A stretch of 64,000 nucleotides of DNA. It comes from Dimorphilus gyrociliatus (lineage: Eukaryota > Animalia > Annelida). Where the stretch lies: the NCBI GenBank assembly GCA_904063045.1, contig CAJFCJ010000003.1, positions 992,001-1,056,000 on the forward strand. The letters are read 5' to 3'. The position numbers and the translations under genes are program-made. Under the pieces are notes generated by a model. It did no database searches, was not told the origin of the DNA, and was given only the letters and a program-made list of their open reading frames with translations. Of the stretch, positions 2,313-56,749 are shown piece by piece. Each line of letters starts with the position of its first letter. Positions within the stretch are counted from its first letter, which is position 1.

Positions 2313-2648
2313 GGAAGGGTGGAAGGAAACGGGAGAAATAATAAATAAATTCAAAGGTAAGGGAGAATGATTTCTTCTATTCAGATATATATAAATAAGA
2401 GAGACAAGAGAAGAATAACAAGTAAACGTATATATGTAAATAATTAAAGAAAATTTAAAATAATTAGTTTATCATCTATCCTTTCGCTTTCTTTCAATGT
2501 TAGCGATAATAGAAATTAATGCAATTAAAGTTAAAAATCTTCTATCTATACAGTTTATATAAATAAATATATTAATTAATCTTTACATTCTATTCTATTT
2601 CTTTATACCAGTTTTCATAATTATAACAAGTATTTAAATTATACATTA

Positions 2649-2651
<3 letters not shown>

Positions 2652-2697
<46 letters not shown>
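2652..2697. repeat. (TA)n microsatellite
   Basis: About 23 uninterrupted TA units seen directly. Confidence 0.95.
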
Positions 2698-2700
<3 letters not shown>

Positions 2701-3499
2701 AATGTTCTCGTTCTCATGGAACGAAGAGGTTTGTCTTTCCCTTCGAGAAAAATTCTCATTAAACTCTCTAAGGTAATAGTTATGAGAAATTATATATATA
2801 TATATATCTTTTTAAACTATAGGCCGATATAATAGTATAAAGAACTTAAAGAGGAGAGGAAAGAAAACTCCTGTATTATTAAAAAAATATATCATATGGA
2901 AAAGATAAGAATTTCGTTTATATCGTAAAACCTCTATTTAAAATATTGTATAAGAGGTACTTTACAGATAATAAAATCAATTTCATTACTTTTATTCTCT
3001 TGGTCTGGTGTATATTTTGTTCTTTTTATAGTAAAAAACAATAAGAAATAGGTAATTCGCCTTGCTTTATTCTTATACAATTGTTCCGAAAGGAAGGATT
3101 TGTTGTTTGTATTTCTTAGTCTTTTTTATTATATTTATAATAAAAATAATAAAATGGTTTACCTTCTTATTCAATAAAATTAACAGTTTCAGATTTCTGT
3201 TGTTCAGAATAATATGAAAGAAATTGTTAAAATTAGGATTAATTACTAAAAAATCCAATTAAAATATATTTTCTTCCATTTTATGATCATTCAATTCTAT
3301 TATTTATACTTTTATGGTTATTTGTTTTATATTTTTCTCTTTATTGAATTGTGCACCCAACCGCTAGTATATCTTTCTGCTATTTGAATGATAGTAGCCC
3401 CCTCTATTGGACAAGCGAATTGAAATATCCTCGAGATGTTGCTACGTGAGTTCTATCGAGCAGACGACAAAAAGAAAGTCCAGCGAATATTCATCGGAA

Positions 3500-3556
3500 A
3501 TGGTGAAAATTGATCACTATTTACGTGAAAATGGGCGAAAAAAGGAGCAAATCTAA
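3500..3556 (+). promoter_or_regulatory. Out-of-frame upstream ORF (18 aa, MVKIDHYLRENGRKKEQI*) overlapping the HS6ST start codon
   Basis: ATG at 3500 in a different frame from the main ATG at 3531; stop TAA at 3554-3556, downstream of the main start. Whether it is in the mRNA is unknown. Confidence 0.45.
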
Positions 3557-6416: not shown

Positions 6417-7610
6417 ACAATATCGCCTTTTGCCAATAATTTTTAATCACTTTTTAATTGTTTTCCATTCGTTAAGTAGCTTGTTTGCTATTATTTCAAC
6501 AATTGTTTTGAGTTTTTAATACATTATTGTCTTTTTAAAAGTTTTGTTTTCAATTTTTCTCTTCTTTTTTCGTCTTGAATAGAAGATTATGATATTATTT
6601 TTCATTGTATATTTTCATCGTTCACAACGAGAATAAATCATTTTGTTTCTGTTAAGCCTATATACTGTATGTTATTGATTATTGCTTGGAATATATTTTC
6701 CACGTCAAAGTTTTTATATATCTGAAGTGAAAATATTATACACTCTATATAATATTTGGTTAATACAACAGCGAGATATTAATTGCTAATTTACTGATAT
6801 TATTCTATTATATCTAATATACAGTATATATATATACTGTGTATTGCATAAGATACGCTTTAGCCTCCGGTTTTTCTTTGTTTGTATACTTGAAAGCAGA
6901 CAGTTTATATATTATACTTTTCACTTTTTGCTTTTGTCAATATTTTCCTTCAATTTTTGATTTACCATTAAAAATATAATTTGTACAGAGTCAACAATAA
7001 ATACTTTCCTTTTATTTCTATTTTCATTGCTACAGCAAGGTTACTCTACACAAAGCTCTAATTACATTAGCTTTTGAGTGTTTCAAAGGGAAGGCATCTA
7101 GAAGGTTTTTCTCTTTTCTTACTGTAAAAGAAAAAAATTGAAAGTCGATGTTCTTTTTATCAATAATTTTATGAGGGATATAGACGATTAGGAGAAAGGG
7201 AGTGAATGGTCCCATTGGGGTTAATGCCAAGGGCAATTGATAAGCCCCTATGGTTTTATAAAATGAATATAACATAAATGAGTACTGAATAGATTCATTA
7301 AACCTAGCTTTTTTAGTACGAATAATATCAAAAATGCCCAGAATAATATATAAGAATGATTAGATTAAAACGTCCTTGACTTTCATATAAATTCTGCAGA
7401 GATCGATGATGAGTATATCAAAGAGACTTTATTCTTAATAAATTAAATTAAAACGTTTTAAACAAATAAATTAAATAATCAGAAAATAGCCACAAGCCAA
7501 CATATTAAAATTTATTACAAGTTTGTAATTACACTACTGCCGTCGCTTTTCTTCCTTAAATCCAGCTGTTGCATTTCCGATGAAGGATCAACAATATTAT
7601 TTATGTAAAT

Positions 7611-7642
<32 letters not shown>

Positions 7643-10600
7643 AACAAGTAAAGAATCTACTAAGATTCTGTTTTCAAACTGAAAATTTTCTTTTAATGAG
7701 GTGAAACTGTAAAGTGAAAAAAAGCAGACCAACTGCAAAGTAGAATGGTTTGGTTTGTTTTATTTATTTTAGTTTTTTTCTTTTTTGCGAATGGCATATT
7801 ATGCTTGGTAAAGAGTGAGAGAGGGGCTAAGTTATTAAAAGGAGGAAAGGATGGAAAGAGGAACTGTTTTGTTCTTTTTAAAATAATGATACATTTTCAT
7901 TAGGGAAACAATTAACTGCAAGTGTTTTTTTTTATTCGTCTTATTATTAATAAATTCATTCGTTAAATTTTATTCAACGAACTTGTGTTTGTTTAGCTTT
8001 TGCCTTTACCAACAATATAAAAGATTCCCCGCGGAATTGATTACAAAAATTTCTCTTTCCTTATTATTTGTATGCTTTTTTCATTGTCTTTACTTTTACG
8101 TTGATTAATGATGTATTAATCTTCTAAAGTAAAGTATCTTTTCACATAAATTAATTGAATACTTGAATAATTGAAAGACAACTGCTTTAGGAACATTATT
8201 GATCACTTAGGCATTTGTTTATGGTTGTTTACATTTCAATGTAAACAAGGAAGCTCTGCCTTGTCCAAGTAAAGTTTAATATTAATATAGAATTTCCGAT
8301 GTTTCTGTCCAATTATACGTAGAAAAGATAACAGTAAAAACTATATAGAAGTTTGCTTACACCAATAAAAAGAAATGTTAAACTATAATGTATTTGTTAA
8401 GTATTAAATTTAAAAGTGAAGTTGAAAAGTATGAAAAATAACAAAAATTGGTAAATAGAATAGTCTCCTCTTCAATTTTTTCCCCTACTCCCGTTCCCCC
8501 CTTAGAAATAAAAGATTAGGCAGAGGATAAAAAAATATATTGACATCTAATTAAAAAGGATAATATCTTTTTTTCCGTATTTAATTCCCCGGATAATTCT
8601 AATTCCAGTTTTTGAAAAAGGAAAAAAATAACTAATCACATAAAATTATTAGGTTCTGCAATCCAAATGAAATATCTTTCTTGTTCAAACATTCCTTTTT
8701 ATCATTGTTCTTAAAGGGAAAGTTATTAATTTTACTCTGATAGATAAATCGTTATAAAGACAATGGTATCATATAAAATTCTTGAATAATTAATTATTAT
8801 CTGTCAATTCTTCATTCTCTCTTTTTTTGAAGAGATTAGTTAATTAATACACTAATTAATTCTTAATTACTAACTCTCCTTAATTTTTCCATTTTCCTTT
8901 ACTAGTAGTACTAAATGCGTAGATTTCAAATTGGAATATTAGTTTTCCTAAATGAAAAAATAGGTAATATATTACTTCAATGGCCTATTTCCTGTTAATT
9001 ATAAAATGATATATTTTACATTAAAAGTTTGACCTCTCTGTTGATTTTATTTAATATAGTCTATTCATAAAATTCATTAAATTAAACAATCTCTCCCCAG
9101 AAAAGAAAGCTCTGGCCTGAAGGTTTCGCCTCTTCCTCTTCTCAAAAAGGCAGACCCATTTGCTAGTATAGAAGATATAAATTAGACAAGTGATTTTTAC
9201 TTTATACTCTTTTTTTTCAGTAAAAATAACTATAATCAATAAAGAGAATGATGATATGGATTGATCGAACATTTATCCAAAATACTTTAGTCGATAATCT
9301 ATAATAAAAAAAAAATATAGTAGTAAATCAACTGGCTGAAAACTAGTTTATCGAATAGAGAATAATCAGCATAAAAGGGTCATATGAAGTATATTTAGTT
9401 ACGCAATTTTCGTCTTCTTCTTCATCTTTTTCTACTTTTTTTGTTTGCTAAATAAATTAAATAGAATGACAAATAAATAAAAAATAAGTTAAAGGTTAAA
9501 TAGTTATTTCTCCTCTCTTTCTCTCCCTCTCGGTACGTTGGATACTTATATTATTCGTTACTATTTGTATAGATCACTTTCTTCCTTTCCATTCAGTTTA
9601 AACATGATTATAGGCACATAAAGTAGAAGATTTAAAACTGCCCTCTTTTGATTATGGGCATCTGTTATTGCAAAATCTTAATAGTAGTCATCTTTCCTGT
9701 AAGGTGATTACAGAGTTTCCTCTATTGAATTATCGATCATTTTCCCAGCAGGTAACCAATTTTTGGCCAATTATCGAATTTGTAAATTAAATTTTATAAC
9801 AATCGACAAATACACTTGTTCATTTTAATTCGTTAATATACGTTTATATTTATATATATATAGTTAAATTGTTAGAAAGGTTTTAAAAACAAAAATCTAA
9901 TTTTTTATTGTCACAAAACATTAGCTTCTCATTATGAAATTGCAGAATCTAATCCATTCCAGTGTTAACTGTGCTAAAATAAAAGTGTAAAACTGGAAAA
10001 TACACTAAAAAAGAAAAAACATAAATTCTTATAAATCTTAAGAGATTCCTTCTTCTATACGTCTAGGGAATCGTTCAATTATTGATTTATAACAGCTTAT
10101 AATTATAATAAATATAAAGAAAAAAACAAAGTGTACAGTCTAACTTTTTAATATCTTAAACTGTTATATGTTTGATATGTAAATTTATTGAATCTAACTA
10201 CTATTTTAGGAGGGATTTTCATCGTATAAACATCAAATCCATTTCTATTACTATTTTTCAATGTCTAATTTCTAATATCCCCTTATTTTAGCATTATAAA
10301 GCACACTAATTTTACCACAATCGAAAGGAAATAGTATGAATATCTTTGTTAAATTATATATTATTAAATGATCTATTAGGAAATATATATAAAAAAGAGT
10401 TTAAGAGTTTAATATATGTTTTATAATAAATCTATATTTCGGGTATAAAGCTATATTTATATAAAGATAAGAATTTTTATTATAATCAAACTCATATCCA
10501 CCGCTTTATTCATTACAGTAAAGATATATATATATGTTAAAATATTAATATTTAGCTTATTGAAAATAGTCATTGACGTTGTCCAGATGTTGGAAAATTT

Positions 10601-13534: not shown

Positions 13535-15471
13535 ATGAAAATTCTATTGATTTTCTCAGGTTTTGTACATTTAGTTGTAAATTGAATATTAATTTAATGT
13601 TTTTTTTTATTGTAGTTCTCTTATTTGTTGGACAAGCTCTTTCCAACTATGTTTGTCCTCGTGACGAATATTTGAAACCTGTTGATGGCGCGTTTGCTGA
13701 TCCTAATAATTGTGGAATCTTTTATCATTGTACAAACGGTACTGCCTACGCTCAACAATGCCCACCTGGTTTACATTTTACAATATTGAGAAAAAATTGT
13801 CAATTCTTTACTTGTGTTGATCCAAAAGATGCCGATTGCCCTGGAAACAATTCCGTAAACGATGCAGAGTTTAGACCATGTTCTGAAAGTACACCGGTCG
13901 CCCTCAATTCGGATCAAGCTTGTTACAGCAAGGATAATGAATGTCAAATCACAGTGAATGGAACTTTTCCGAATAAGAAAGATTGTAGACAATACTATCA
14001 TTGCGTAAATGGAATCGCTTGGCCTCAACAATGTCCCAATGGACACTACTTCAGTCCATCATTAAATGTAAGAGATTGTAATTCAAAGTTATGCGTTCCA
14101 CTGGAAGAAGCACAGTGCAGCATTAACGGTAATTGGTCAACTTGGTCTGAATGGGAACAATGCGAGCCATCATGTGGTGATGGTATTAGCATACGTCGAC
14201 GAAGCTGCACCAATCCTCCTCCTTCTAATGGAGGAGCAAACTGTGAAGGTAGCGAATACGACATCAAACCCTGTATTAGTGAACCTTGTAGACTCTTGTC
14301 TCAGCCATCTTTTATGGTTGCCCAAAGAAATCTTGACACATATTCACAGGGAATCATTCGTTGGAGTAAAGTATGGTATAATTTTCAAGATCTCTTTGAT
14401 CCCGAAAAGAATAGCTTAAATATTTCTGAGAGCGGGTTTTATATTTTATCATTGTCTGCCGCTTTAGCTTCACGCCAAGGAATTACATTTAGACAAACAA
14501 CCCCTCAAAATAATGGTCTATATAGGAGAGCTGATGGAAATAATATTTATGAAGAGGATATGATATCTCAAACAGGAATTCATTTTTTAACCCGACTTAG
14601 CTCACCATTAATTCGTCAAACTTCTTCTTCAACTCGCCTATTCAGCTCTTTAAATGGTAGAGAAACATCTTGGTCCGGTTTTAAATATGAATCAAATAAC
14701 GTTCTCTATGCGGGTACTCTTAGTTCCATAATCTATCCTTCAAAGTTACGTTTGGAGAGAATTGCCACAATTAGGGGCTTTTCCCAATCTGATAATAAGG
14801 AAGACTTTAAAACGTCAGAGGGTGGTTGGTATTACATTAATTTTGGAGTGGGTTTCTATCAAAATCGAATGGCCCAAATTGCTCTTCAAATTAACAATGA
14901 AGTTCAATTTAAGAAGACATTAATAAGATCACATACCAGTTACTCGACCCGTGACCAAGGATCTAGAGGATTAGTTGTAAGACTAAATTCATCGGATACC
15001 ATTGGTTTACGTTTCATCAGCGGTGTTATTTATTCCGGAAATAGCCTAGTAACATATCTAACAGCTTGCAAACTAAATAGTTCAGATGGCTCTCCTCTAT
15101 TATACGCCTATAGAAAAAATGACTTTTCGTCATCCCAATTCTCATCATTAACCTATAATACTACTGTTATTGATACTACAAATTCGTGGAATGGTGAATA
15201 TTATACCGCAAATATATCAGGCTTGTATCATGTCGATATCTCTATTGGTCTTCAGTCGAGAAAAGATGCTCATTTAAGAATATATGTAGACAATGAAGAA
15301 GTTTTATCACTCCTTCGTTATTCAAGGCTTCATTCAGGTATCGATACAATATCTAGAACAGGACTAGTTAAATTGAAAAGAGGCTCTAAATTGCAAATAA
15401 AAGCAAATGGTGATTTAGCAAGTGATAATAAAGAATTAATATCGATAACTATATTTCTAATATCGCAATGA
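13535..15471 (+). CDS. Copy A: secreted 2xCBM14 - TSP1 - 3x gC1q protein, 626 aa; join(13535..13559,13616..15471)
   Basis: Spliced signal peptide MKILLIFS|VLLFVGQALS with a 56-nt phase-1 intron. Two peritrophin-A-like Cys domains (C..FYHC..QQCPPGLHF), a TSP1 repeat (WSTWSEWEQCEPSCGDG..RRRSC), and three C1q-like segments (PSFMV..GFYILSL; GWYYINFG..SRGLVVRL; GLYHVDISI..SRTGLVKL). TATATAAA at 13456. Confidence 0.9.
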
Positions 15472-16420: not shown

Positions 16421-17256
16421 AATTTAAAGATATCCCTTCTTTAATGCTATCAAATAACGAATTGCTTTATTAAAAAAACTGTTTTGACAAGGTAAATAGT
16501 ATCTAAAACGGAATGGATAGAGCGCTTTCCATCCTACTTTTTACCTTATATAACAAGTCTTATCCATCGAATTAGCATAATCTAATTTATAATGTAAATT
16601 TAATGCTCTTATCATAAGATCTTACTTAATAAAACACGTTGATATTAATGCGCCTTATAGATAAATATCGAAAGTATAAAATCAGCAGAGTCCAACGTTC
16701 TATTAAATTTATAAATCTGTTGCAAAATTTTCTAATTCTTATTAAATCAACCACTGCAGCAATGAAAATAGCATATTATGAAAGATGTCCTGTAAAATTT
16801 GTATAGCCAATCATGAAGCAAATATTTATTATTAGATGGATAATCAAAATTGATTAGTCAGCAATAAAATGATAATATATGAAGTATAAGGAAAGAAAGA
16901 TGAACAATTGAACAATTACACTGGAAAGTGTATATGTAAAAAGACCTAAAAAGAGGATTAATCATACGGTGAAGAACTAGAACTACTAAGATAAATAAAA
17001 CACTTTTACCGTTTTTAAAAACAAGACTATCAATTGATAAACACTCTCACATGTAATTTAGAAACTGAATAAAAATCAGAAAATTCAAGCCTCACTGCTT
17101 AATTAGCATAAAAACGTATTACATTCTTATTAATATTCATAATTTTCTACCTGATCTTCATACTTTTTCTAAAATAGTATTTCTCTTGATCGATATTACA
17201 TATTAAGAAATATTCAAGTGTAGTACAGTTACGTACATTTCTCTTTAGAAGTTGCA

Positions 17257-17288
17257 TTATCTGCCTTATCGCTGCTATTTTATGATAA
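17257..17288. promoter_or_regulatory. Three GATAA cores upstream of copy B (mirrored upstream of D)
   Basis: TTATCT 17257, CTTATC 17265 and TGATAA 17283, about 80-110 bp upstream of TATAAA at 17367. The AT-rich background lowers significance. Confidence 0.35.
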
Positions 17289-17293
17289 CCTAA

Positions 17294-17299
<6 letters not shown>

Positions 17300-17335
<36 letters not shown>
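17300..17335. repeat. (AT)18 in the copy B promoter
   Basis: Seen directly; ends ~30 bp before the TATA box. Confidence 0.95.
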
Positions 17336-17338
<3 letters not shown>

Positions 17339-17401
17339 TCTGACAATCAACTACTCCGAAACATTTTATAAAGTGAGCTAAAAGAAGTAAAGACAAAAAA
17401 A

Positions 17402-19387
17402 ATGAAAATTCTTCTTTTAACCATTTTCGGTAAAGTATTTAATTAAATAAACATATGAACAATATTATCTAATAAAAAGTTAATGCTTATTCAATGTGTC
17501 TTTTTTATAACAGCGTTCCTTTCAATCGGTTTCTCTATTCAATTTCAATGTCCGTTAAATTCGGATTTACAACCAATTGATGGAGCATTTGCCGACCCAG
17601 AATTTTGTGGTGTATACTATCATTGTATAAGCGGTACTCCTTTCCCTCAACAATGCCCTCCAGGACTCTTTTTCACCGTTTCTCTAACCAACTGTGAATA
17701 CTCAACTTGTGTAGAACCTGAAGAAGCTGAATGTCCAGGTGGAAATTCTACACTTATCGTTAAGAATCAAGATTTTCGTCAATGTTCTACTGAACCTGAC
17801 GAGGTGATGTCTTTTGAAGAACCATGTTATATGAAGAATTCGGATTGTGATGGAAAAATGAATGGAACATATCCAAACAATAATGATTGTAGACAATATT
17901 ATCATTGTTATAATGGTCTTTCTTGGCCTCAGCAATGTCCAGATGGATATTTTTTCAGTCCATCATTAAATGTTCGAGATTGTACTACGAAAATGTGTGT
18001 AACAATTGAAGAATCCGAGTGTCCAATGCCAGGAGGATGGTCTGAATGGTCAAGTTGGTCGGATTGTGATCCATCCTGCGGTGATGGTCTTCGAACTCGT
18101 ACAAGGAGTTGTACAAATCCGCCACCAATGAATGGAGGCGAAGATTGTCCTGGAAATTCAGTTGATATAGATTTGTGCTTTAATCCACCTTGCGGTGTAG
18201 TCAAAGAGCCAGCATTTATGGTATCAATGACAAGTCTTGTATCTCTTTCTCGTGGTACTGTCAAGTGGCATCGAATAAATATTAATAATGGCAATCTTTT
18301 TAATGCTACAACAAATTCATTAAATGTTAAAGATAGAGGATTTTTCTTCAGTTCTATAACAGCAACGACACAAAGTTTAGGAGGTGTGTATTTTGTAGAC
18401 GAAGGATCGGGCATTTCTTCTGCTTTATACAAAAGAAAAGATCGTATTGATCTGCGAAATTCTGAAACGTTATCCAAATCGGGCACCTACTTTTTCTCAT
18501 CTCCTTCAAATAAAAAATATTTTCACGAAAATTCAGCCGCCAGTGTAGTTGGATCGGTATCAAGCAGTGATACAGCATGGACAGCATTCCGATATGAAAC
18601 AAATAATGCATTTTTTGTTTCAACAACTTCAGCATTTTTTGGGACTGAAAGAATGATACCATTCAATAGAATAGTATCGCTTCGTGGCTTTGCTATGGAT
18701 CCAAATAGACAACGATTAACTGTCTCAACTAAAGGTTGGTATTTTATAAATATTGGACTTGGATTTGAATCTAGGAGGGCCGCAAAAGCATCTTTTGTTA
18801 TTAATGATCTCAATAACAAACCCGGTTGTGAGATAGGGAGAAGTGATACTAGATATGTTGGTAACAATCAGGCATCAAGAGGATTTATAGTAGAACTAAA
18901 TCCTGATGATAAAATTGGTTTGAAGTTAATAGAAGGACGAGTGAGATCACTTCTTTTTTATACTTATATGACTGGATTTAAACTAAACGCAACTAGTGAT
19001 AGTCCCGCATTTTACGCTTATAGTAGTGTTAGTCAAAGTATAACAACGAGAAGGAAACTAGCATTTGACACAGTCGTTTTAGATGTGTCATCAGGATGGA
19101 GTACAATTGATAATACATACAAAGTGGCTGTATCAGGTCTCTACTATATTGAAATATCAGTGGGTGTGTTTCCTCAAAGTCAATCCGTTGTCGAAGTTGT
19201 GGTTAATAATGATGTAAAGTTGGGAATGCGTTATTTATCAACTGCACATAACGCGTATGATGTAAAAAGTAGAGGAGGTTTGCTTCAAGTTCAAGAAGGC
19301 GATTCAATTTCTATTGAAACTTCAAATCCCGCTTATAGTGATGAATTAAAATTGACTTCATTCACTTTGTTGTACGTTTCACCATAA
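17402..19387 (+). CDS. Copy B: secreted 2xCBM14 - TSP1 - 3x gC1q protein, 633 aa; join(17402..17429,17514..19387)
   Basis: Signal peptide MKILLLTIF|AFLSIGFS with an 84-nt phase-1 GTAAAG..CAG intron. Same domain order as copy A. TATAAA at 17367. Confidence 0.92.
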
Positions 19388-19696
19388 TATATAATCTGCT
19401 TAGGTCGTCATATTAAGTTGTGTATTATTTGATATTGTCAGATTCAAATTATTTAATTCATTATCTGAATCAATTGTATGTTTTGTTCGTAAAGATGTCG
19501 ATTCTAAAGGAAATTGAGATGTGGAAATTTTCTATTATCGCTTGATAACATACACTCTTTTTTGAACTATAGAAACTTTTAAACTATTTAATAGAATGCT
19601 CTCAGTATTATTGAAATTCTTCTATTTAACCAAAGTTGAGATGAAACCTTTTGATATAAGGACTATAAACTTTCGAAATACTGGAAATTTAAGAAA

Positions 19697-20525
19697 AGAA
19701 TTAACTTTAACGAATGCAATTTATTCAATGCTACGAGGAACTCAATCATTTTTAGAGATATAGAATTCTACTTTATGTGTCTTTCAAGAACAAACACAGG
19801 TGGAGGATATCTATATTTTACAGCAAATCAATCCTTTTCATATGGACTTACGAAACCAACAATGCTTTTTTTGTTGCTAGGACTTCGGGACAAGAGATTC
19901 CAGTCCTGCTTTCTTTTAGTCAAATTATAGCTCTTCGTAGTCTTAGTATTGATTGTAATCGACAGATGTTAACCGTCTGGACTAAAGGCTGGTACTCTAT
20001 AAGTATTGGAGTTGGATTTGTAACTAGAAGATTAACTAAACTTAGCATGGTGATTAATAATAATACTAGCAGGCCAGAATATGATTTAGGTATAGATTAT
20101 ACGAATCCAAGTAGCTATACTCAAGCATCCAGAGGATTCATTGTTGAGTTAGAGAGTTCTGACAAAATTGGTTTGAAATTGCTTGAGGGTCAAATAAGGT
20201 CACAGCATTTGTACATATATCTAACCGGATTCAAGCTAAATGCTACCAGTGACAGTCCTACATTTTATGCATACAGTAGCGTTAGTCAAACCATAACATC
20301 CAGAGGGCAAATAGCATATGATACAGTTGTCTTAGATACAACTTCATCATAGAGTTCAATAGATAATATATATAAAGTTGCTATATGAGGTCTCTACTAT
20401 ATTGATATGTCTGAAGGCATTATTCCCGGAACTCAATCAGTAGTAACTGTTTTGGTGAACAATTCTGTGAAAATGAGAATGCGTTTTTTGGAAACAGGAC
20501 AACGGTCTTATGGTATGCAGAGCAC
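19697..20525 (+). pseudogene. 5'-truncated pseudogene containing only C1q-domain sequence of the same family
   Basis: Begins RINFNECNLFNATRNS (cf. B RININNGNLFNATTNS). An internal deletion with frameshift near 19845 jumps to YETNNAFF..GWYSISIG..ASRGFIVEL. Premature stops at TAG 20350-20352 (W in B) and TGA ~20386 (S in B). Homology fades near 20525. No signal peptide, CBM14 or TSP1. Confidence 0.9.
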
Positions 20526-21033
20526 CTGTTTATCTTATGATTTTTAACTTATAGTATTTTTTGAACTTTTTTCTATAGATTAATAATACAAAGTATGGAA
20601 TTAACTTTCATTCAAGATTAATAATAAATCATACGATGTTATATATAGAAAATAGCTCGTATCATTTTAAGTGTAAAAGAATACACAAAAAGAACCATTT
20701 CTTGACCTTTTTCATATGATATATCATCAATCAATCTAGTTTATAATTAATTATCGTTAAAACTAATAACTTTCAAGAATTGTTGCGTAATTGAGAAATT
20801 TCTTTTGTTTATTAGTAGATAATTATAATATATTCATAATAAGCAAACATCTTAAATTTGATAATTATTTGTTTGGTAAAAGAAAACGCACACATTCATT
20901 AATATCATTATCTTTACGATAGTGTAGATATGATTTAAGATTCAGTAGTGTTTTTCGTAGACGGACTTGATAAGATTTAAATGATGTTTAATTGTTACAA
21001 AGAAGTAATTCAAACGATTTACAACAAACTATT

Positions 21034-23012
21034 TTAAGAAGAAATGTAAAACAAAGTGAATGATGTCAATTTTAATTCATCACTATAAGCGGGATTTGAA
21101 GTTTCAATAGAAATTGAATCGCCTTCTTGAACTTGAAGCAAACCTCCTCTACTTTTTACATCATACGCGTTATGTGTAGTTGATAAATAACGCATTCCCA
21201 ACATTACATCATTATTAACCACAACTTCGACAACGGATTGACTTTGAGGAAACACACCCACTGATATTTCAATATAGTAGAGACCTGATACAGCCACTTT
21301 GTATGTATTATCAATTGTACTCCATCCTGATGACACATCTAAAACGACTGTGTCAAATGCTAGTTTCCTTCTCGTTGTTATACTTTGACTAACGCTACTG
21401 TATGAAAAGAATGCAGGTTTATCGCTTGTGGCAGTTATCTTAAATCCGGTCATATATGTTAAAGCCCCTGAATTCGATCTACTTGTTCCATCAATTAGTT
21501 TTACGCCTATTTGATCATTAGCATTCAGTCGAACAATGAATCCTCTGGAACCTTGAGATTCACCAACGTAATTGCTGCTTTTTCTGCCGAGGCTGTACTC
21601 TGGTCTAGTAGCATGATCATTAATAACAAAAGACAATAATCCAGGTGAACGTGATGAAAATCCACTGCCCAAATTTACAAAATACCAACCATCCGTTGAG
21701 ACAGTTAATCTTTCAGGAGATTGTCTTGCTAAACCACGTAATGTTAATACGCTATTAAATGCTATAAGTTTTTCTCTACCCAAAATTGACGTAGTGCTGG
21801 CTACATAGAAAACATTGTTTGTTTCATATCGAAAACCTGTCCATGAGGTTTCACTACCTTCAGGTGATCCAGTTATTAAAGAAAATCTAATTGCATCATA
21901 TCTTGGTGAATTTATGGTTGTATACAATTTTGTTCCTGCCCTGGTTAAGGATTCTGAATATGCGGCAGTAGAATCCCTTGTGAATCTATGAAGAAAGTGA
22001 CTTACAGCTGATCCTCTTGATGAAACCTGAAATGAGGTTGTCCTTCTTATTGAAAATGTCAGTGAACCATAGTAAAACCCGGTTTCATTAATTCTCAAAG
22101 AATTTGTGAGAATATTAAAAACATTACCACGATTGTGATTAATTCTCTGCCATCTAATTATTCCTGCACGTATTACATCGTCCGATCTCATTGATACCAT
22201 AAATGCTGGCTCTTTGACTACACCGCAAGGTGGATTAAAGCACAAATCTATATCAACTGAATTTCCGGGACAATCTTCGCCTCCATTCATTGGTGGCGGA
22301 TTTGTACAACTCCTTGTACGAGTTCGAAGACCATCACCGCAGGATGGATCACAATCCGACCAACTTGACCATTCAGACCATCCTCCTGGCATTGGACACT
22401 CGGATTCTTCAATTGTTACACACATTTTCGTAGTACAATCTCGAACATTTAATGATGGACTGAAAAAATATCCATCTGGACATTGCTGAGGCCAAGAAAG
22501 ACCATTATAACAATGATAATATTGTCTACAATCATTATTGTTTGGATATGTTCCATTCATTTTTCCATCACAATCCGAATTCTTCATATAACATGGTTCT
22601 TCAAAAGACATCACCTCGTCAGGTTCAGTAGAACATTGACGAAAATCTTGATTCTTAACGATAAGTGTAGAATTTCCACCTGGACATTCAGCTTCTTCAG
22701 GTTCTACACAAGTTGAGTATTCACAGTTGGTTAGAGAAACGGTGAAAAAGAGTCCTGGAGGGCATTGTTGAGGGAAAGGAGTACCGCTTATACAATGATA
22801 GTATACACCACAAAATTCTGGGTCGGCAAATGCTCCATCAATTGGTTGTAAGTTTGAATTTAATGGACATTGAAATTGAATGGTTAAGGTAAATGAAAGA
22901 ATTACTGCACAAGAAAAATAATATAAAGATTAAATACAAAATGAATGAAAATATTTCTAGTTTGTTTTGAACGCGAATTCATACCTGAGATGAATAGAAA
23001 CAGATTCTTCAT
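21034..23012 (-). CDS. Copy C (mosaic): secreted 2xCBM14 - TSP1 - 3x gC1q protein, 632 aa; complement(join(21034..22904,22985..23012))
   Basis: Signal peptide MKNLFLFIS|VILSFTLT with an 80-nt phase-1 GTATG..CAG intron. The frame is open upstream of the track's GTG start at 22614. TATATAA at 23047..23053. Confidence 0.92.
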
Positions 23013-24417
23013 GGCGTTTATTACAGTTCACTTAGTTGTACTGTTCTTATATAGCTATTTTATCTGTTGGTAATGATTAGTAAACTTTTTTATCTTTGAC
23101 TACAGTATATAGTTAATAGAATGATATTATATATCTTTGAGGTCGTAGCCTTAATAAAGCTTATCCTTAAGTAATATTTTTCCATTTATCGTATATAAAG
23201 CCACTTAAATTGTTATTTTAACAATGTTGGTAGTTTTTGTTTTTGAATAATTATTTTTCAGGATGTGTTAAGAAATTTGCAACAATTTGTCAAGTGTGTT
23301 TGCTTAGCTGTGTGGTTTTTTCTAGAAGTAAGGTTGTTGACATGTAGTCATTCTGTACCTCTTATCACGTGTTATAGAGTTCCTCTCTCCTTTAGATTAT
23401 AATATAATAAATATAAAACTCAGTGATTAGCATTATTACTTAAGATTAGACGAAGAACTTATCTATTTCACAAGTTTCTGTACCAATTTCTGACACAAAA
23501 AATGTCATTTTATAGTTACATTTTCTTTTAATCTAATCAAAATTAAAAGTCAAGTCATTCAGGAAGGCATCTCTTGCTTTTTTTTGTAATTAACAATTAA
23601 CCAGAATTTTAAGTTTTCAATATAATAAATTACCAGTTTAACTTTAATTACCGGCCAAATGAATTGATTTCTAAGCAAAAAACTTAATTTTATCCAAATA
23701 GTTGGTCTAATAATACCCTTTTCCTAACTGTTTTTTCAAGTAGTCACGTTTAAATAAAACATCTCCTTTTAGAGAAGGGTTAGTATCATTTCCAAATCTT
23801 CTTCAATTTATATTTTGTCCTATCTATTTACTATACTTTTCAGTAAGGATTTAAAATCATTATCTAAACTTTCTTTACTTTTTAGATAGTAATTTAAATG
23901 TCTGTTACATCTTCTTCAATTACATAAATTTGTACTATAGTGTTCGGAACCAGAAAAAAAATTACACATTACGTTTTGTTCCCTTTTCATTATATTAACA
24001 TGACAATAGGCATCTAGGGCAGCAAGCTCTTTTTAGTTGTCTTAAATTGACCTACCAAAATAGTGCAGTAGTTCAAAATGACAGTTGTAGTTGTGGCGAT
24101 GAAAAAGCATTTCAGTTTTCAGTATTTCGGAAGTATATAGTCCTTATATCAAAAGGTTTCATTTCTCCACTTTGGTTAAATAGAAGAATTTCAATAATAC
24201 TGAGAGCATTCTATTAAATAGTTTAAAAGTTTCTATAGTTCAAAAAAGAGTGTATGTTATCAAGCGATAATAGAAAATTTCCACATCTCAATTTCCTTTA
24301 GAATCGACATCTTTACGAACAAAACATACAATTGATTCAGATAATGAATTAAATAATTTGAATCTGACAATATCAAATAATACACAACTTAATATGACGA
24401 CCTAAGCAGATTATATA

Positions 24418-26403
24418 TTATGGTGAAACGTACAACAAAGTGAATGAAGTCAATTTTAATTCATCACTATAAGCGGGATTTGAAGTTTCAATAGAAATTG
24501 AATCGCCTTCTTGAACTTGAAGCAAACCTCCTCTACTTTTTACATCATACGCGTTATGTGCAGTTGATAAATAACGCATTCCCAACTTTACATCATTATT
24601 AACCACAACTTCGACAACGGATTGACTTTGAGGAAACACACCCACTGATACATCAATATAGTAGAGACCAGATACAGCCACTTTGTATGTATTATCAATT
24701 GTACTCCATCCTGATGACACATCTAAAACGACTGTGTCAAATGCTAGTTTCCTTCTCGTTGTTATACTTTGACTAACACTACTATAAGCGTAAAATGCGG
24801 GACTATCACTAGTTGCGTTTAGTTTAAATCCAGTCATATAAGTATAAAAATGAAGTGATCTCACTCGTCCTTCTATTAACTTCAAACCAATTTTATCATC
24901 AGGATTTAGTTCTACTATAAATCCTCTTGATGCCTGATTGTTACCAACATATCTAGTATCACTTCTCCCTATCTCACAACCGGGTTTGTTATTGAGATCA
25001 TTAATAACAAAAGATGCTTTTGCGGCCCTCCTAGATTCAAATCCAAGTCCAATATTTATAAAATACCAACCTTTCGTTGAGACAGTTAATCGTTGTCTAT
25101 TTGGATCCATAGCAAAGCCACGAAGCGATACTATTCTATTGAATGGTATCATTCTTTCAGTCCCAAAAAATGCTGAAGTTGTTGAAACAAAAAATGCATT
25201 ATTTGTTTCATATCGGAATGCTGTCCATGCTGTATCACTGCTTGATACCGATCCAACTACACTGGCGGCTGTATTTTCGTGAAAAGTTTTTTTATTTAAA
25301 GAAGGTAAGAAAAGGTAAGTGCCCGATTTGGATAACGTTTCAGAATTTCGCAGATCAATACGATCTTTTCTTTTGTATAAAGCAGAAGAGATGCCCGATC
25401 CTTTGTCTTCAAAATACACACCTCCTAAACTTTGTGTCGTTGCTGTTATAGAACTGAAGAAAAATCCTCTATCTTTAACATTTAATGAATTTGTTGTAGC
25501 ATTAAAAAGATTGCCATTATTAATATTTATTCGATGCCACTTGACAGTACCACGAGAAAGAGATACAAGACTTGTCATTGATACCATAAATGCTGGCTCT
25601 TTGACTACACCGCAAGGTGGATTAAAGCACAAATCTATATCAACTGAATTTCCGGGACAATCTTCGCCTCCATTCATTGGTGGCGGATTTGTACAACTCC
25701 TTGTACGAGTTCGAAGACCATCACCGCAGGATGGATCACAATCCGACCAACTTGACCATTCAGACCATCCTCCTGGCATTGGACACTCGGATTCTTCAAT
25801 TGTTACACACATTTTCGTAGTACAATCTCGAACATTTAATGATGGACTGAAAAAATATCCATCTGGACATTGCTGAGGCCAAGAAAGACCATTATAACAA
25901 TGATAATATTGTCTACAATCATTATTGTTTGGATATGTTCCATTCATTTTTCCATCACAATCCGAATTCTTCGTATAACATGGTTCTTCAAAAGACATCA
26001 CCTCGTCAGGTACAGTAGAACATTGACGAAAATCTTGATTCTTAACGATAAGTGTAGAATTTCCACCTGGACATTCAGCTTCTTCAGGTTCTACACAAGT
26101 TGAGTATTCACAGTTGGTTAGAGAAACGGTGAAAAAGAGTCCTGGAGGGCATTGTTGAGGGAAAGGAGTACCGCTTATACAATGATAGTATACACCACAA
26201 AATTCTGGGTCGGCAAATGCTCCATCAATTGGTTGTAAATCCGAATTTAACGGACATTGAAATTGAATAGAGAAACCGATTGAAAGGAACGCTGTTATAA
26301 AAAAGACACATTGAATAAGCATTAACTTTTTATTAGATAATATTGTTCATATGTTTATTTAATTAAATACTTTACCGAAAATGGTTAAAAGAAGAATTTT
26401 CAT
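24418..26403 (-). CDS. Copy D: secreted 2xCBM14 - TSP1 - 3x gC1q protein, 633 aa; complement(join(24418..26291,26376..26403))
   Basis: Inverted near-duplicate of B with the same exon structure; 14 amino-acid differences. TATAAA at 26433..26438. Confidence 0.92.
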
Positions 26404-26466
26404 TTTTTTTGTCTTTACTTCTTTTAGCTCACTTTATAAAATGTTTCGGAGTAGTTGATTGTCAGA

Positions 26467-26469
<3 letters not shown>

Positions 26470-26501
<32 letters not shown>
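26470..26501. repeat. (AT)16 in the copy D promoter
   Basis: Paralogous to the (AT)18 of copy B, two units shorter. Confidence 0.95.
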
Positions 26502-26507
<6 letters not shown>

Positions 26508-28546
26508 TTAGGTTATCATAAAATAGCAGCGATAAGGCAGATAATGCAACTTCTAAAGAGAAATGTACGTAACTGTACTACACTTGAATATTTCTTAATA
26601 TGTTGAACATTAGATTTTCTCTTGAGAGAGTTTGCTTTTTATATATACAATATATATACGTATGCATACATATATGCAGTATATATATATATATTTTTTA
26701 ATAAATTAATTAAACTACTATTTATCATCATGAGCTTCAAATACTCCTTATTTATTGACCTTTTTTTATCAATAATCTAAAGATTATAAACATTTTATTA
26801 AGTTCTTTGAGGTTGCGACCTCTGAATCATTCATGATTATAATATACTTAGGTCGCTTTCTTTCATGTGATTGCTATAGACCCATTTCGAGTTCAAGTAA
26901 TTTAGTTTGATTATCTCCTTCGATAACAAAAACTAACGATATATATTTTTTGACGCCGAAATAATTGGTTAACTATTTTTGATTTATTCCTTGATAATAG
27001 TAAAGGAATTTCCAGATTTTTTGACATCTCTGTTTCTCTTATGACAGACCACTTTCAGTATCTGAAATTAGCGACAGCTAATATAATTTCATATATAAAG
27101 AAAGATAATGCAATTGCATCTTGATCATTTATAGAAAACGATTCCATTCTCTTCAGGAAAATGTAATAAAATGAAAGAAACACGAAAAATTGAAACTTTT
27201 AACTTAATGACTATCAAAAAGATTTTATTCATTCATTATTAAAATTGTTTGAAATATAGATGAGCAGTTTGAATTTCTTTCAGATATTCTTTTAGGAGAA
27301 AAGAACAGTTTCACCAAGGAGATACATTTTAAGTGGCGTATTTTTCATTCAGCCAGCTTTTTTCAAAAAGCTTCTTTAGAGAGTTGTTTTAATGTAATTT
27401 GAACTAACTAATGTTAACATCCCTATATATTCATATAGTTAAAGACATTTCAACGGTAGTTGGCAAAGTTAAAACTACTTTTCAAACATAAACAATTTGT
27501 CATTTAATTTTCCATCTTGTTGTTTCAAAATCTGTTTCCATACTCCTTCTATCTTATCTCAATCGTTGACCTTTTTATGTTTATTTATAGTGTTTTCTCA
27601 ATGCATAGAGAATTATAAAAATACTTTATTATTAATAAAAAAATTAGATGACCGTAATTAAACTATGGCAATTTCTGTCACAAGTTACCACTTTCTTCCT
27701 GTCTCCTACGCACTGTATCTCTTTCTCTCTTCATTTGTCTCTGTCTCTCTGTCTTTCTTTCTGCTGTGAGACCTACCATATGCGTAATATTTCTGTCCTG
27801 TTTTTATTATACTTATTTATACCTTTTTCGAACCTGATTCAATACAAACTAGTATATTATCGATACAATTTAAATATTCATTTTGAACGAGTATTTTCTC
27901 TTCTTCGAACGAAAAATTCATAAATATACTAATTTAATTCATATTGATAGTTAATTAAACAAAGTTAAACTACTCAATTTCGTATGCCCTATTTGTCCTT
28001 TTAAATATTATCTTTATGTATTTTTGATATGGACTGACTCTTTCAAAGTTTAAAAAAATTGGCTAATGTCGCATATGGTTTTTTCTCTTAATACTAAATT
28101 TAATATGGCTATTTTTAGATACAAACAAATGCTAACTAATAAGAGGAAGGGACATATTTTAAATAAGATATAAATATAATAATACGTTTGTATAAGAAAT
28201 CAATAAAAGCAATAAATTGACAAACATTTTCATTAGCATTCCTATGCTGTTTATAAATTTATATTTACATACATAAGAAGACTGATAGAGGGTTGAAGTT
28301 TATGTAACACATATGAAAATCTTATTCATTTTTTATACAAATCAAGTACGAAAAGTATACGATACAGTGTAAGGCCATATAATAATTTTTAGCAAAGCAT
28401 AGGCGGATATCTGGGAACTTTATGATATGTTACATATGGAAAATTTAACAGAAATATATATTTACAACTAAATATAAACATTTCAGAGAGTATATAAGCT
28501 GAAAAATTTTATTGAGAGACAGTCCGATCTTGACTGAATAATAAAG

Positions 28547-29421
28547 ATGAAAGTTCTAGCTTTACTTGCTCTTGTTGCTGTTGCCGTTCAGGCTAAACCA
28601 CGTGATCCTGCTTTCTTGACCACTGAAGTTGGTTACATCGTTGGAGGTGAAGATGCTTCCCCTGGTGAATTTCCATGGCAAGTATCTTTGCAAAGATGTT
28701 CTGGTGCTTCATGCAGCCACAACTGTGGAGCCATCGTCATGAATGCCGACTGGGTTTTGACTGCTGCCCATTGTATCCAAAACCCATCCCTCGCTTCTCA
28801 TAGATTGGTCTTCGGTCTTCACAGACGTAGTGATGAATCTGGAGCTCAAGCTAGAACTCCATCCATTGTTAGACCCCATCCAGATTGGATCAATGACGGT
28901 AGCTTGGGATTCCCCAACGATGTCGGTGTCATGAAAGTCTCTGAATCTGTTGTTCTTTCTGGAAATGTTGCTGCAGCTACTCTTGTATCTTCATCTGTTG
29001 GAAATTTGGCCGGACAAGCCTGTGTCATCTCTGGTTGGGGACGTACCGCTGGTGGAGCACCTTTACCCGATGTTCTCCAAAAAGCCGACACCCGTGTCTT
29101 GTCCACTGCTGAGTGCCAAGCTCAAGGAATTCCTCAAGCTGATGATGACTTCCATATTTGTCTTAACAACGATGCCGGAACTACCAACTCCTGCAACGTA
29201 AGTCTAACATCTTACAAAACATTTTGTACAAATTCTTAATATAAAATCTTTTCCAGGGTGACTCTGGTGGCCCATTGAACTGCCCAATCGGAAGCGGTGG
29301 CTCTATTCAAATTGCTGGTGTTACATCTTTCGGTATCATCTTCTGCCCACCAAACAGACCAGCTGGGTATGCCCGTGTTTCTTACTACCGTGACTGGATC
29401 GATTCCAACTCCCAAGATTAA
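28547..29421 (+). CDS. Secreted S1A serine protease (chymotrypsin/elastase-type pocket), 271 aa; join(28547..29197,29257..29421)
   Basis: Signal peptide, propeptide ending GY|IVGG, HNCGA, TAAHC (His57), PNDVGV (Asp102). A 59-nt phase-0 intron precedes GDSGGP (Ser195). Residue 189 is Asn, not Asp. TATATAA at 28491, AATAAA at 29447. Confidence 0.95.
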
Positions 29422-31453: not shown

Positions 31454-32331
31454 ATGAAAGTTTTAGCTGTTCTCGCTCTTATTGTAGTGGCCTCTCAGGC
31501 TAGACCAAGTTCCAACAAAGCTAATTTGCAACCTTTTGTTGGCCGTATCATCGGAGGAGAAGACGCAGCACCAGGCGCTTGGCCATGGCAAGCATCTCTA
31601 CAAAGATGCACCATCGGATGTTCTCACAGTTGTGGTGCCGTTGTTGTCAATGAAAACTGGGTTCTAACTGCTGCTCATTGTATCCAAAATCCTGATCCTT
31701 CCGGATACAGAGTTGTTGCTGGACTTCACCGCCGTAGTGACGAATCTGGTGCTCAACCTAGAGATGCTTCCCAAGTTATTTCCCACCCTGAATTCATCCA
31801 AGATGGAAGTCTTGGATTCCCCAATGATGTTGGTGTTGTCAGAGTTTCTTCTGCTTTTGATTTGAGTGCTTCAAATGTAGCTGCAGCTACTCTTGTCCCA
31901 AGCAATGCTCCAAATTTCGCTGGACAAGCTTGTACTATCTCTGGTTGGGGTCTTACCGTTGGAGGAGGATCCGGTTTACCTGATGTTCTTCAACAAGCTG
32001 ATACCCGTGTTTTATCCACCGCTGATTGTCAAGCTCAAGGAATCCCACAAGCTGATGATGACTACCATATATGTATCAATGATGACGATTTGGAAACCAG
32101 CTCATGCAACGTAAGTTTAATTCATATAATTCTACAGAATTCTTACTAATTTCAAACATATTTTAGGGTGACTCTGGTGGCCCATTGAACTGCCCAGTTG
32201 GAGCAAATGGCGCTTACCAAGTTGCTGGAATCACCTCTTTCGGTATTATTTTCTGCCCAGAAGATACCCCAGCCGGATATGCTCGTGTATCTACCTACCG
32301 TCAATGGATCGATGACAACATCAGCGCTTAA
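31454..32331 (+). CDS. Secreted S1A serine protease paralogue (chymotrypsin-type pocket), 273 aa; join(31454..32110,32167..32331)
   Basis: Signal peptide, propeptide ending GR|IIGG, TAAHC, PNDVGV, 56-nt phase-0 intron before GDSGGP. Residue 189 is Ser. TATAAAA at 31396, AATAAA at 32365. Confidence 0.95.
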
Positions 32332-34339: not shown

Positions 34340-36265
34340 TTAACTTGATACGATAAACATTGTTAGAGAAATAACTCTTCTATTATTACTATTTAAGCCA
34401 TCTGTAGCTTTAATTTGAACTCTATCTTTTTCCTTCAAATTCAATAGACCAGACCTTGACATAGTATCAAAGTTATTATGCAAATTCGAAGTACGTACTA
34501 GTGAAAGTCTCCTTTGTCCATTGACATGAATTTCTAAATTAAGTCTTGTATTTGGTGAGCTTCCAGCGTTTACTTCTATAAAATATAAGCCAGAGTATTC
34601 AATTTCGTATTCGCTGGTTGAACTATGCCATATATTTCCATTGTTAAAAACCACATCATCGTATGAAACATTTGATAGAGATGAGCTAAAAAAATCCCCA
34701 GAACGGCGTACGTAGAGAACGGGCGTGAAAAACGTAGTATTCAATTTCATTGCCGTCATATACGTATATAAATTATTTGTTGACCTAATAGCACCAGACA
34801 ATAAGCGAAGACCTATGACGTCATTTGCTTCCAAGAAAACGACTCCACCCCTTGACGCTTGGTCATTTTGGAAGTTGTTCGATTGGCTTCTGCTTAATGA
34901 GAAATTAGTTTGTGGCTCGTTATTAATAGTCAGTACTACATCTGACGTTGTTCTAGCTTCAAAGCCAGTTCCGATATTGATATAATACCATCCACTATCA
35001 GCAACTCTATAGGAATAAGAATTAGGAACGGGTGCAGCCCCTCTTAGAACGATTATTTCTTGCAATCTGATATCTCCTGGATTATTTTCATTAAGTGAAC
35101 TACCGCAAAATAGTAAATTTCTCGATTCGTATCTAAAAGCTAACCAAGATGTTTCGTAGCCATCCTCTCTACTAAAAATAGGAGTGCTAAAAGTTTCAAA
35201 TTCAGCGTAGGGATTAAATAATCTATTCAGAGAAAATATGCCACTTCTCGAAAATGTATCCACTCCATTAAAAGATGATCCAGTTTGTCTAAAGAGTGCC
35301 GATAGTCTGCCGGTACCTTGTAGTGAAGAGTGATATCCATTTCCTGTGCTTGATCCTCCACTTAACGACATGTAATAAAAGCCATTTTCTTCAACCTTCA
35401 TTTCTGAATTGGATGGATTATATAGGTCCTTATTGTTAATTACAACAGAATTCCATATCATTTTTCCAGGAAGTAGAAAGGGAGAATTTCTATAACCAAC
35501 AAAAAAGGCTGGACTAGAACCAAAAGTACAATTTCTACTTTGACAGACTTCTATATCTGTTGACGATCCAGGGCATTTTGCACCGCCATTGGCTGGTGGA
35601 GGATTGTTACAACTTCTTTCTCGTATTCTGATACCAGTTCCACATTCTGGTTCGCAAGGGCTCCAACTCGACCACGAACTCCAGGAACCACCAGTTGGAC
35701 ATGCGGCATTTTCAAGCGGAACACATATCCTTCTATCGCAATTCCTAGTATTCAAGCTAGGATTAAAGAAAAAACCAGAAGGACATTTTTCAGCATACAC
35801 TCTATCAGAAAAACAATGAAAGTATTGAGTACAATCCGTATTATTAGCAAAAGTTCCATTTTGTTGACAAGTTTCGTAGGACTCTTCTGAAGCTTTGGCA
35901 TCGAAATCATTGAAAAATTTAACTTCATTTTCCTCAGATTGATTATAGCTTGGACAATTCGATTCGGCGGGCGAAGTACACATAGTAAAATGACAATCCT
36001 TATGAGCAATTGTAAAGTGAAGACCGGGAGGACACTGCCTTAGGTGAAACGTACCGTTGATACAATGATAATAATTATTACAATTTATTGGATCGATAAA
36101 AGCTCCATCGATATAATTAAAATCATCATCAGTTGGGCAAGAAAACTGCGACAAGGCTCCGTGCAAGAGGATAAAAGCTAATATTAAAATAACATTAGGA
36201 TTAATACAGAATTAAAGATTATATAAATAAAACTTACCGAAAGTCAAAAGGATAAGACCCTTCAT
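34340..36265 (-). CDS. Copy E: secreted 2xCBM14 - TSP1 - 3x gC1q protein, 621 aa; complement(join(34340..36177,36238..36265))
   Basis: Signal peptide MKGLILLTF|AFILLHGALS with a 60-nt phase-1 GTAAG..TAG intron. Same domain order, but a divergent paralogue. TATAAAT at 36305..36311. Confidence 0.92.
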
Positions 36266-55700: not shown

Positions 55701-55898
55701 TTTAAAATAAAATAGTTTTTCTCCCTTATCCATTGTTTATGTATTATTATTTTTAGTTTCTGCCAGTTCGGGGCACCAATCGAGCAAAATTATTTAAAGC
55801 AATGTTTATAGTGAAATTTACAACAGCTAACGAATGAATAAGTAGTTGAAATAGAGAAAGGATGAGGGGCAGGAGGAGGAAGAGGGAGGGGGAGGGGG

Positions 55899-55902
<4 letters not shown>

Positions 55903-55973
<71 letters not shown>

Positions 55974-56020
55974 GAGAGAGAGACAGAGAGAGACAGAGAG
56001 ATAGATAGATAGAGAGATAG

Positions 56021-56072
<52 letters not shown>
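55903..56072. repeat. Compound (AG)n/(AGAC)/(AGAT)n microsatellite
   Basis: Seen directly; ~680 bp upstream of the ATPase beta start codon. Confidence 0.95.
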
Positions 56073-56073
<1 letters not shown>

Positions 56074-56749
56074 AACTAGATAGAAAGAGCAATAACGTAA
56101 AAGAGAAGGATAGTAATGGTGGGTTGAAAGTAATAGGGTGTAGAGAAATTTCTCCATTTTCCTTTTTTTTTAAACAAAAATAAACTATTCTATTCTCCTT
56201 GCAAGTCCTCTGATTTTTTATTTTCAATGATTTTTAACAATCCCTGTATTGAATTTATCAAATATATAAAATTTTTATTTAAATATTGTCTTACACTACT
56301 AGGACTAAAGATAAAATTGGAAAAATACACCGTATTATTCATAAATTCTCATATTGATTTTGACTGTTACTCAACAACACTAATGTACAATAGTTGTTAA
56401 TTAGTTATTCTGATACGTGTATTATCGTTATTTGAAAAATTTTAATGAATACATAATCTTAGAATTTATAAGTGATAATTTATCGAAAGATGGCGCTGCA
56501 TAAAACACTTATTCATCATATTAAATTTAGTAGCTTTTTTTGGCTAATTTAAATGATTTATAGCAATTTGGGTCAATAAAATTTATAAGTATTTTTTTTT
56601 AAATTTACCTAATATCTCTTTCAGTAAATTTATAGAAAATAAAAGGGCGATATTATAATGAGTACAATATTGAAAAAAAAAACCAACGAGCGCCACCTGC
56701 CCCAACATCCGGGACTCGATTCGTTCCCCGGCTCATTTTGCCTAAAAAC

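Follow-up and report, generated by a model that had tools for sequence, protein, structure and literature searches.

Within a 64,000-nucleotide stretch of the genome of the annelid Dimorphilus gyrociliatus (contig CAJFCJ010000003.1 of assembly GCA_904063045.1, forward-strand positions 992,001 to 1,056,000; hereafter the window, in which all coordinates are counted from the first base), we identified a palindrome formed by two near-identical copies, B and D, of an immune-type gene, with a pseudogene fragment, psi, and a third paralogue, C, lying between them. This locus is very probably a real inverted segmental duplication, either young or homogenised by gene conversion, in a locally expanding immune-type family. 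It is an ordinary inverted duplication with conversion between its copies, and not a demonstrated switch.

A complete two-exon gene is duplicated in mirror orientation

Self-BLAST and repeat finding were performed on the whole window, and base-by-base alignment was used to place the arm edges and indels. Arm 1 (17198-19687, plus strand), which carries gene B with its 5' and 3' flanks, aligned in inverted orientation to arm 2 (24116-26603, minus strand), which carries gene D, with 98.8% identity over 2492 columns, 24 mismatches and 2 gap openings. One of the two indels involves 4 bp within an (AT)n microsatellite (17300-17303), and the other is an AA dinucleotide at position 19640; the microsatellite itself, (AT)18 at 17300-17335, is situated about 100 bp inside the outer arm edge and has an (AT)16 partner at 26470-26501. 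Homology stops abruptly at both ends of the alignment, the sequence beyond being unrelated, and arm 2, like arm 1, is bordered by unique sequence on both sides. The arms enclose a spacer of 4428 bp (19688-24115), not itself palindromic, which contains psi and gene C, so that the order along the window is B(+), psi(+), C(-), D(-). Long near-identical inverted arms, here of 2.49 kb, around a non-repeated spacer are what defines a palindromic segmental duplication. An earlier sequence-only reading of this DNA had described inverted arms of about 99% identity in this same layout, and both points were borne out, the former by the alignment and the latter by sequence search and open reading frames (ORFs).

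Each arm contains 204 bp upstream of the ATG, a 28-nt exon 1, an 84-nt GT..AG intron, the remainder of the gene and 300 bp of 3' flank. Gene B (17402-19387, plus strand) has a TATA-like motif at 17367-17372, its ATG at 17402, an exon 1 of nine codons plus one base (17402-17429), an intron at 17430-17513 and an exon 2 at 17514-19387, ending with the stop codon at 19387; this splice pattern is the same as in the annotated copy C. Gene D (24418-26403, minus strand) is likewise an intact ORF with Pfam-supported domains, its exon 1 (26376-26403) and intron (26292-26375) being identical to those of B and followed by an exon 2 at 24418-26291. The earlier description of the arms as including promoter, intron and 3' flank was therefore fair, given the TATA-like motif, the GT..AG intron and the 300-bp flank found within them. 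We propose that a 2.49-kb unit, comprising one complete two-exon gene and its flanks, would have been copied in mirror orientation 4.4 kb away, and that the near identity of B and D would stem from youth, from arm-to-arm gene conversion, or from both.

Gene C is a mosaic carrying two converted tracts

Gene C (DgyrCDS2148; 21034-23012, minus strand) has its own ATG, a 28-nt exon 1 (22985-23012), an 80-nt intron (22905-22984), an exon 2 at 21034-22904 and a TATA-like motif at 23053-23047, and its splicing is confirmed by the annotated protein DgyrCDS2148. Comparison with B revealed two blocks of near identity. The first, which had already been reported in the sequence-only reading as a 664-bp tract, is indeed present at 17567-18230 of the plus strand in B and at 22188-22851 of the minus strand in C; it covers both CBM14 domains and the TSP1 domain, with a single mismatch at 18151. 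The second spans 329 bp of the third C1q domain, with 2 mismatches, at 19028-19356 (plus strand) in B and 21065-21393 (minus strand) in C. Outside these tracts B and C are only 35-73% identical within the gene (sliding windows, codon alignment), and the two genes have unrelated 5' and 3' flanks. The edges of the tracts lie immediately past the signal peptide, at the boundary between TSP1 and the first C1q domain (C1q-1), and around the third C1q domain. The middle of C is closest to B and D, yet shares only 48% amino-acid identity with them. An ectopic donor for this divergent middle was also considered and rejected: none was found in the genome, and B and D stay its nearest kin.

Sharp tracts of near identity that include synonymous sites, set in otherwise diverged paralogues, are the signature of interlocus gene conversion, and B and C carry it. 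Because identity extends to synonymous sites and the edges are sharp, the tracts reflect gene conversion rather than purifying selection. To judge from these tracts, recombination between inverted copies has certainly happened at this locus, and on the same alignment C is an old paralogue carrying two converted tracts. At 5 of the 6 B/D-variant sites inside the tracts C matches B, and B and D differ there by about 0.5%; with C siding with B at these sites, the simplest history has B as donor and C as acceptor, and we infer conversion in the direction B to C. If so, the exchange would most simply have taken place between inverted copies 2.5-4 kb apart. The constant modules of C (CBM14-TSP1 and the third C1q domain) would then have been overwritten, most simply from B, while its first and second C1q domains would have stayed old and different. 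A likely mechanism would be ordinary homologous break repair templated by the nearby paralogue, with tracts ending where homology falls.

The other occupant of the spacer, psi (19697-20523, plus strand), begins 10 bp beyond the end of arm 1. Both tblastn and its stops identify it as a truncated pseudogene fragment, consisting of part of C1q-1 followed by the second and third C1q domains, with at least 2 in-frame stops, including one TGA and one TAG. Its tblastn matches to B have 43% and 57% amino-acid identity, and at the nucleotide level it is 72-78% identical to B, C and D; it shows no recent exchange with any of the three. The earlier reading had placed a silent cassette and copy C in the spacer. 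Both elements do occupy it, but psi is a truncated pseudogene fragment without such exchange.

Half of the substitutions between the arms fall in one patch

Within the coding sequence, 19 codons differ between B and D through 20 substitutions (15 nonsynonymous, 5 synonymous); the earlier manual count gave the same number as our codon comparison. Half of all substitutions between the arms (12 of 24) lie in a 138-bp patch of the first C1q domain (18396-18533, plus strand; partner in D 25409-25272), a clustering with P about 1e-9. The patch spans beta-strand D and the F-G strand/loop region of C1q-1, according to the secondary structure of a model described below, and contains 10 nonsynonymous versus 2 synonymous changes, numbers too few to test. 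All amino-acid differences between B and D (14/14) fall on family-variable columns, the patch lying in the family's most variable ones. The 5' flank, exon 1, the intron and most of the 3' flank are free of substitutions, and the last 50 bp at the inner arm edge hold four substitutions and one indel.

Two sources for the patch were tried. A genome search with either version matched only B and D. Psi was rejected as a conversion donor, being 72-78% identical, interrupted by stops, and covering only the first few codons of the patch at 43% amino-acid identity. Three origins are conceivable for the patch: it may have been left as an island when the arms homogenised each other, have been introduced by a small conversion whose donor lies outside this haploid assembly, or have arisen through local diversifying change.

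These data bear on whether the arms have exchanged sequence at all. B and D could be a plain, very young duplication without arm-to-arm conversion, the patch being a later small conversion from, or a polymorphism with, an unassembled copy. Such a history accounts for the mere 12 differences in 2352 bp outside the patch, and the 12 differences in 138 bp within it, some of them adjacent, look templated. It fits less well with neither patch version having a donor in the assembly, with conversion being demonstrably active at the locus, as the B/C tracts attest, and with the four substitutions and indel in the last 50 bp, which suit an older repeat with unhomogenised edges. We regard it as a possible, if somewhat doubtful, history. 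An inverted duplication that is young or conversion-homogenised covers both states of the arms, and it is in this broader form that we favour it.

Spacer inversion and module exchange

Crossovers between these repeats would flip the spacer, so orientation polymorphism is possible, and ordinary non-allelic recombination could invert the spacer now and then. No second spacer orientation was found in the haploid assembly. A more far-reaching proposal is that B-psi-C-D serves as a germline, or even somatic, module-exchange locus, in which the anchor and third-C1q modules are kept identical, the two variable C1q modules are protected and the spacer flips, such that orientation and promoter-swap variants coexist and inverted pairs are a selected architecture. 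This seems improbable to us; if it were true, flips would change which C1q head is made where.

Assembly artefact and other points against a real duplication

The genome was sequenced from adult females using PacBio reads size-selected to more than 5 kb (read set PRJEB37657), assembled with PBcR, polished by Quiver and Pilon, reduced to a haploid version with HaploMerger2 and scaffolded with SSPACE-LongRead; the resulting assembly measures about 78 Mb against an estimated genome of 71-74 Mb, and estimated heterozygosity is 0.16% (PMC7854359). Such a route leaves room for B and D to be two alleles, or one gene read twice, misassembled as an inverted pair: it used both haplotype merging and long-read scaffolding, it produced an assembly larger than the estimated genome, and the roughly 1% divergence of B and D is of the order expected for alleles of a polymorphic immune locus. 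A related contig, C129, is moreover a near whole-contig palindrome at about 99% identity.

The structure of the locus does not resemble such an error. The 2.5-kb arms are shorter than the size-selected reads, and each is anchored left and right in distinct unique sequence within a gap-free stretch (the window contains no N) of a 3.23-Mb contig. A haplotype fold-back predicts mirrored outer flanks of B and D, and these differ; nor is the spacer symmetric, psi occupying one side of it and the full gene C the other. Genome-wide heterozygosity, at 0.16%, is low, and the 78-Mb assembly holds neither a second copy of the flanks nor an alternative contig of the region. An assembly artefact is accordingly a decidedly slim prospect.

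Several observations nonetheless weigh against a real, young or homogenised duplication. The structure is known from a single PacBio/PBcR/HaploMerger2 assembly, of 78 Mb against the estimated 71-74 Mb. Contig C129 (32 kb) is an inverted repeat in all parts retrieved (2450-10000 versus 30000-22839), centred near the middle of the contig, and this palindrome could be a fold-back assembly artefact; because it looks like one, some palindromes in this assembly may be unreal. Youth and arm-to-arm conversion would leave B and D looking alike within this one genome. B and D differ more in their coding than in their flanking parts, an excess that reaches significance only when the inner 50 bp are left out, and since its significance hinges on that omission we did not use the contrast as evidence. 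Finally, B and D are absent among annotated or other public proteins in a word search with the B protein; we suspect that masking of repeats, or the discarding of RNA reads that map to several places, kept them and the related genes on small contigs described below out of the annotation.

No sign of a programmed switch

The sequence-only reading had gone further and proposed a shufflon-like swap between B and C, and its crossover geometry is valid: if B and C crossed over within the 664-bp tract, 18231-22187 would be inverted and the 5' end of B joined to the C1q domains of C. In its favour, the 664-bp and 329-bp inverted B/C tracts (~99-100% identical) and the 2.49-kb arms are good inversion substrates, B and C have exchanged sequence, and the variable part is the ligand-recognition head. 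The remainder of the proposal is unsupported. C is not a silent cassette but a complete gene: it comes with a promoter-like (TATA-like) motif, an ATG, an exon 1 and an intron of its own, and it figures in the annotation as DgyrCDS2148. Because the tract starts right past the signal peptide, what a crossover between B and C could exchange is limited to promoter and signal peptide, and its reciprocal products would be the two mature proteins that already exist. The arms of B and D run colinear from 5' flank to 3' flank, and this haplotype therefore has no such crossover fixed in it; psi is too diverged and broken to act as a donor.

We also searched for the machinery that a regulated inversion would involve. 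No recombinase, transposase or integrase was found by Pfam in 14 of the 17 window ORFs of at least 130 amino acids (the other three being antisense or overlapping), a scan that split genes could escape; the matches comprised only CBM14/TSP1/C1q, trypsin and sulfotransferase domains. Short specific inverted crossover sites were absent from 14-30 kb, the tract edges included, where only gene-length paralogous inverted tracts were present. A programmed or regulated inversion, in which recombination through the 664-bp B/C tract changes the C1q cassette under B's promoter, is highly improbable, and nothing indicates a programmed switch at this locus.

The R64 shufflon (Rci/sfx) has a dedicated tyrosine recombinase, 19-bp specific sites, and one promoter with promoterless alternative ends. 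The palindrome resembles it in that inverted repeats flank segments which, once inverted, would connect one constant 5' part with different 3' parts. It has, in contrast, none of that recombinase, those 19-bp sites, the single promoter or the promoterless ends.

The product is a predicted single-chain C1q head fused to chitin-binding domains

Protein searches for B were made with exon 2 or the open frame rather than with joined exons 1 and 2. From its sequence, Pfam and structural modelling, the product of B begins with a signal peptide and contains two CBM14 domains, a single TSP1 domain and three C1q domains, the C1q domain (PF00386) scoring 60.8 bits where the cut-off is 23.7. AlphaFold2, run on exon 2 with a 19-sequence family alignment, gave a model whose predicted local distance difference test (pLDDT) score was 85-95 across residues 230-624. 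Its best Foldseek matches were engineered single-chain trimers of adiponectin, C1q and Cbln1 heads, among them 4DOU with a template modelling (TM) score of 0.84 and 5HZF with 0.82 (target-normalised, about 420 columns), and its matches also included C1QL, Cbln and C1q heads. Because the best matches are single-chain trimers, we predict a single-chain pseudo-trimer in which the three tandem C1q domains form one intramolecular head. The engineered heads (4DOU, 5HZF, 5KCA) place three jelly-rolls in one chain, as does the predicted head of B; they are, however, laboratory fusions of separate chains, whereas B is a natural gene with three diverged domains. We infer that the B/D product is a putative secreted pattern-recognition protein tethered to chitin.

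A word search detected the fusion of CBM14, TSP1 and triple C1q only in D. gyrociliatus and a few other public assemblies. A similar search of other public data with the variable middle of B gave no match, a negative made weak by length limits.

Inverted pairs and mosaics recur in the family

Only nine gene families are expanded in D. gyrociliatus, and these are mostly immune genes duplicated locally (PMC7854359). A six-frame search of the 78-Mb genome gave 73 scored matches to the present family, many of them full-length open frames. Across the family the N-terminal domains are the conserved part, with a mean pairwise amino-acid identity of 0.55-0.63, and the C1q domains the variable part, with 0.32-0.36. 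About a dozen full-length members, which share some 50% identity with B and lie mostly on small contigs, were not among annotated public proteins, and much of the family may be unannotated.

In the family DNA retrieved, near-identical gene pairs were inverted in five of five cases, which is not an enrichment figure. Beside the B/D locus (C3; 2.49-kb arms, 98.8% identity), these are C65 (~8.8 kb aligned, in blocks of 4.6 and 4.2 kb, 99.95-99.98%), C74 (5.8 kb, 99.7%), C193 (2.0 kb, 99.6%) and C129 (at least 7.5 kb, 99.0-99.3%), the last being the suspected fold-back considered above. Direct copies also exist: C5:228850-238316 holds three direct tandem family genes, neighbours being 92-96% identical. 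Two of them are 96% identical throughout and the third shares only the first 822 nt (93-94%); it is another N-terminal-only mosaic like copy C. Separately, pairs of short C1q-only matches with equal scores occur on C81 (1839-2213 and 9918-10292), C106 (93431-95176) and C46 (298808-300553), one pair direct and two inverted.

The local cluster counts six members: A, B, psi, C, D and E. Gene A (DgyrCDS2147; 13648-15471, plus strand) is an older member upstream of B, with 39% amino-acid identity to it, and gene E (34343-36211, minus strand) is an older member downstream of D, with 37% amino-acid identity to B and the same domain set. An older nested palindrome with A and E as its outer arms was considered and rejected, the two being only 42% identical and not mutually closest.

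Comparison with known palindromes and immune gene families

Mammalian sex-chromosome palindromes (human Y P1-P8, VCY) combine inverted arms of about 99% identity, a unique spacer and intact arm genes; their arm identity is ascribed to arm-to-arm gene conversion, and crossovers between arms invert the spacer (PMC6790999). The B/D arms are likewise inverted, about 99% identical and furnished with intact genes. They differ in scale and content, being 2.5 kb long with an immune-type gene, whereas the sex-chromosome arms measure 10 kb to more than 1 Mb and carry testis-expressed genes, and the spacer here contains a third paralogue, itself a partner in sequence exchange with the arms. Arm-to-arm conversion, the accepted cause of identity in those palindromes, is for B and D a possible one.

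The Sp185/333 (SpTransformer) genes of the purple sea urchin are tightly clustered, small, two-exon secreted immune genes with near-identical segmental duplications, microsatellites at or near the duplication edges, and gene conversion as a proposed source of mosaic diversity (PMC3091723). Shared with the present locus are the clustering of two-exon immune-type genes, the near-identical duplication of gene plus flank and a nearby microsatellite. The protein family is unrelated, however; the duplication here is inverted and that of the sea urchin tandem; and the microsatellite here is set about 100 bp in from the arm edge.

Bivalve C1qDC genes have undergone lineage-specific local expansion and include a triple-C1q protein, HcC1qDC6 (PMC6835236, PMC5519582). 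Locally duplicated secreted C1q-head genes and three tandem C1q domains are common to both, but in D. gyrociliatus a single protein joins the C1q triplet with two CBM14 domains and TSP1.

The locus is a small, clear example of a compact animal genome growing and reshuffling an immune-type family, in a pattern of inverted local duplication followed by conversion that homogenises constant modules while recognition modules stay distinct. With its large number of natural single-chain C1q heads, as predicted, fused to chitin-binding domains, the family could serve as a system for invertebrate pattern recognition.

Other features of the window

The interval between D and E contains two genes for trypsin-like serine proteases, at 28547-29403 and 31454-32313 (Pfam Trypsin, E 1e-34 to 1e-36); they are direct duplicates with about 75% DNA identity. 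Further downstream, a long open frame at 44129-45802, rich in poly-proline runs and without a Pfam match, sits in the only 2-kb bin of the window that is GC-rich (40%) and strongly skewed; it resembles an exon of a protein of the proline-rich actin-regulator type. A degenerate tandem repeat with units of about 35-60 bp and 78-84% identity occupies 55873-56088, with a related inverted stretch at 54686-54800. Near the start of the window, an open frame at 5778-6416 matches the C-terminal half of Sulfotransfer_2 (E 4.5e-6) and is probably one exon of a sulfotransferase gene.

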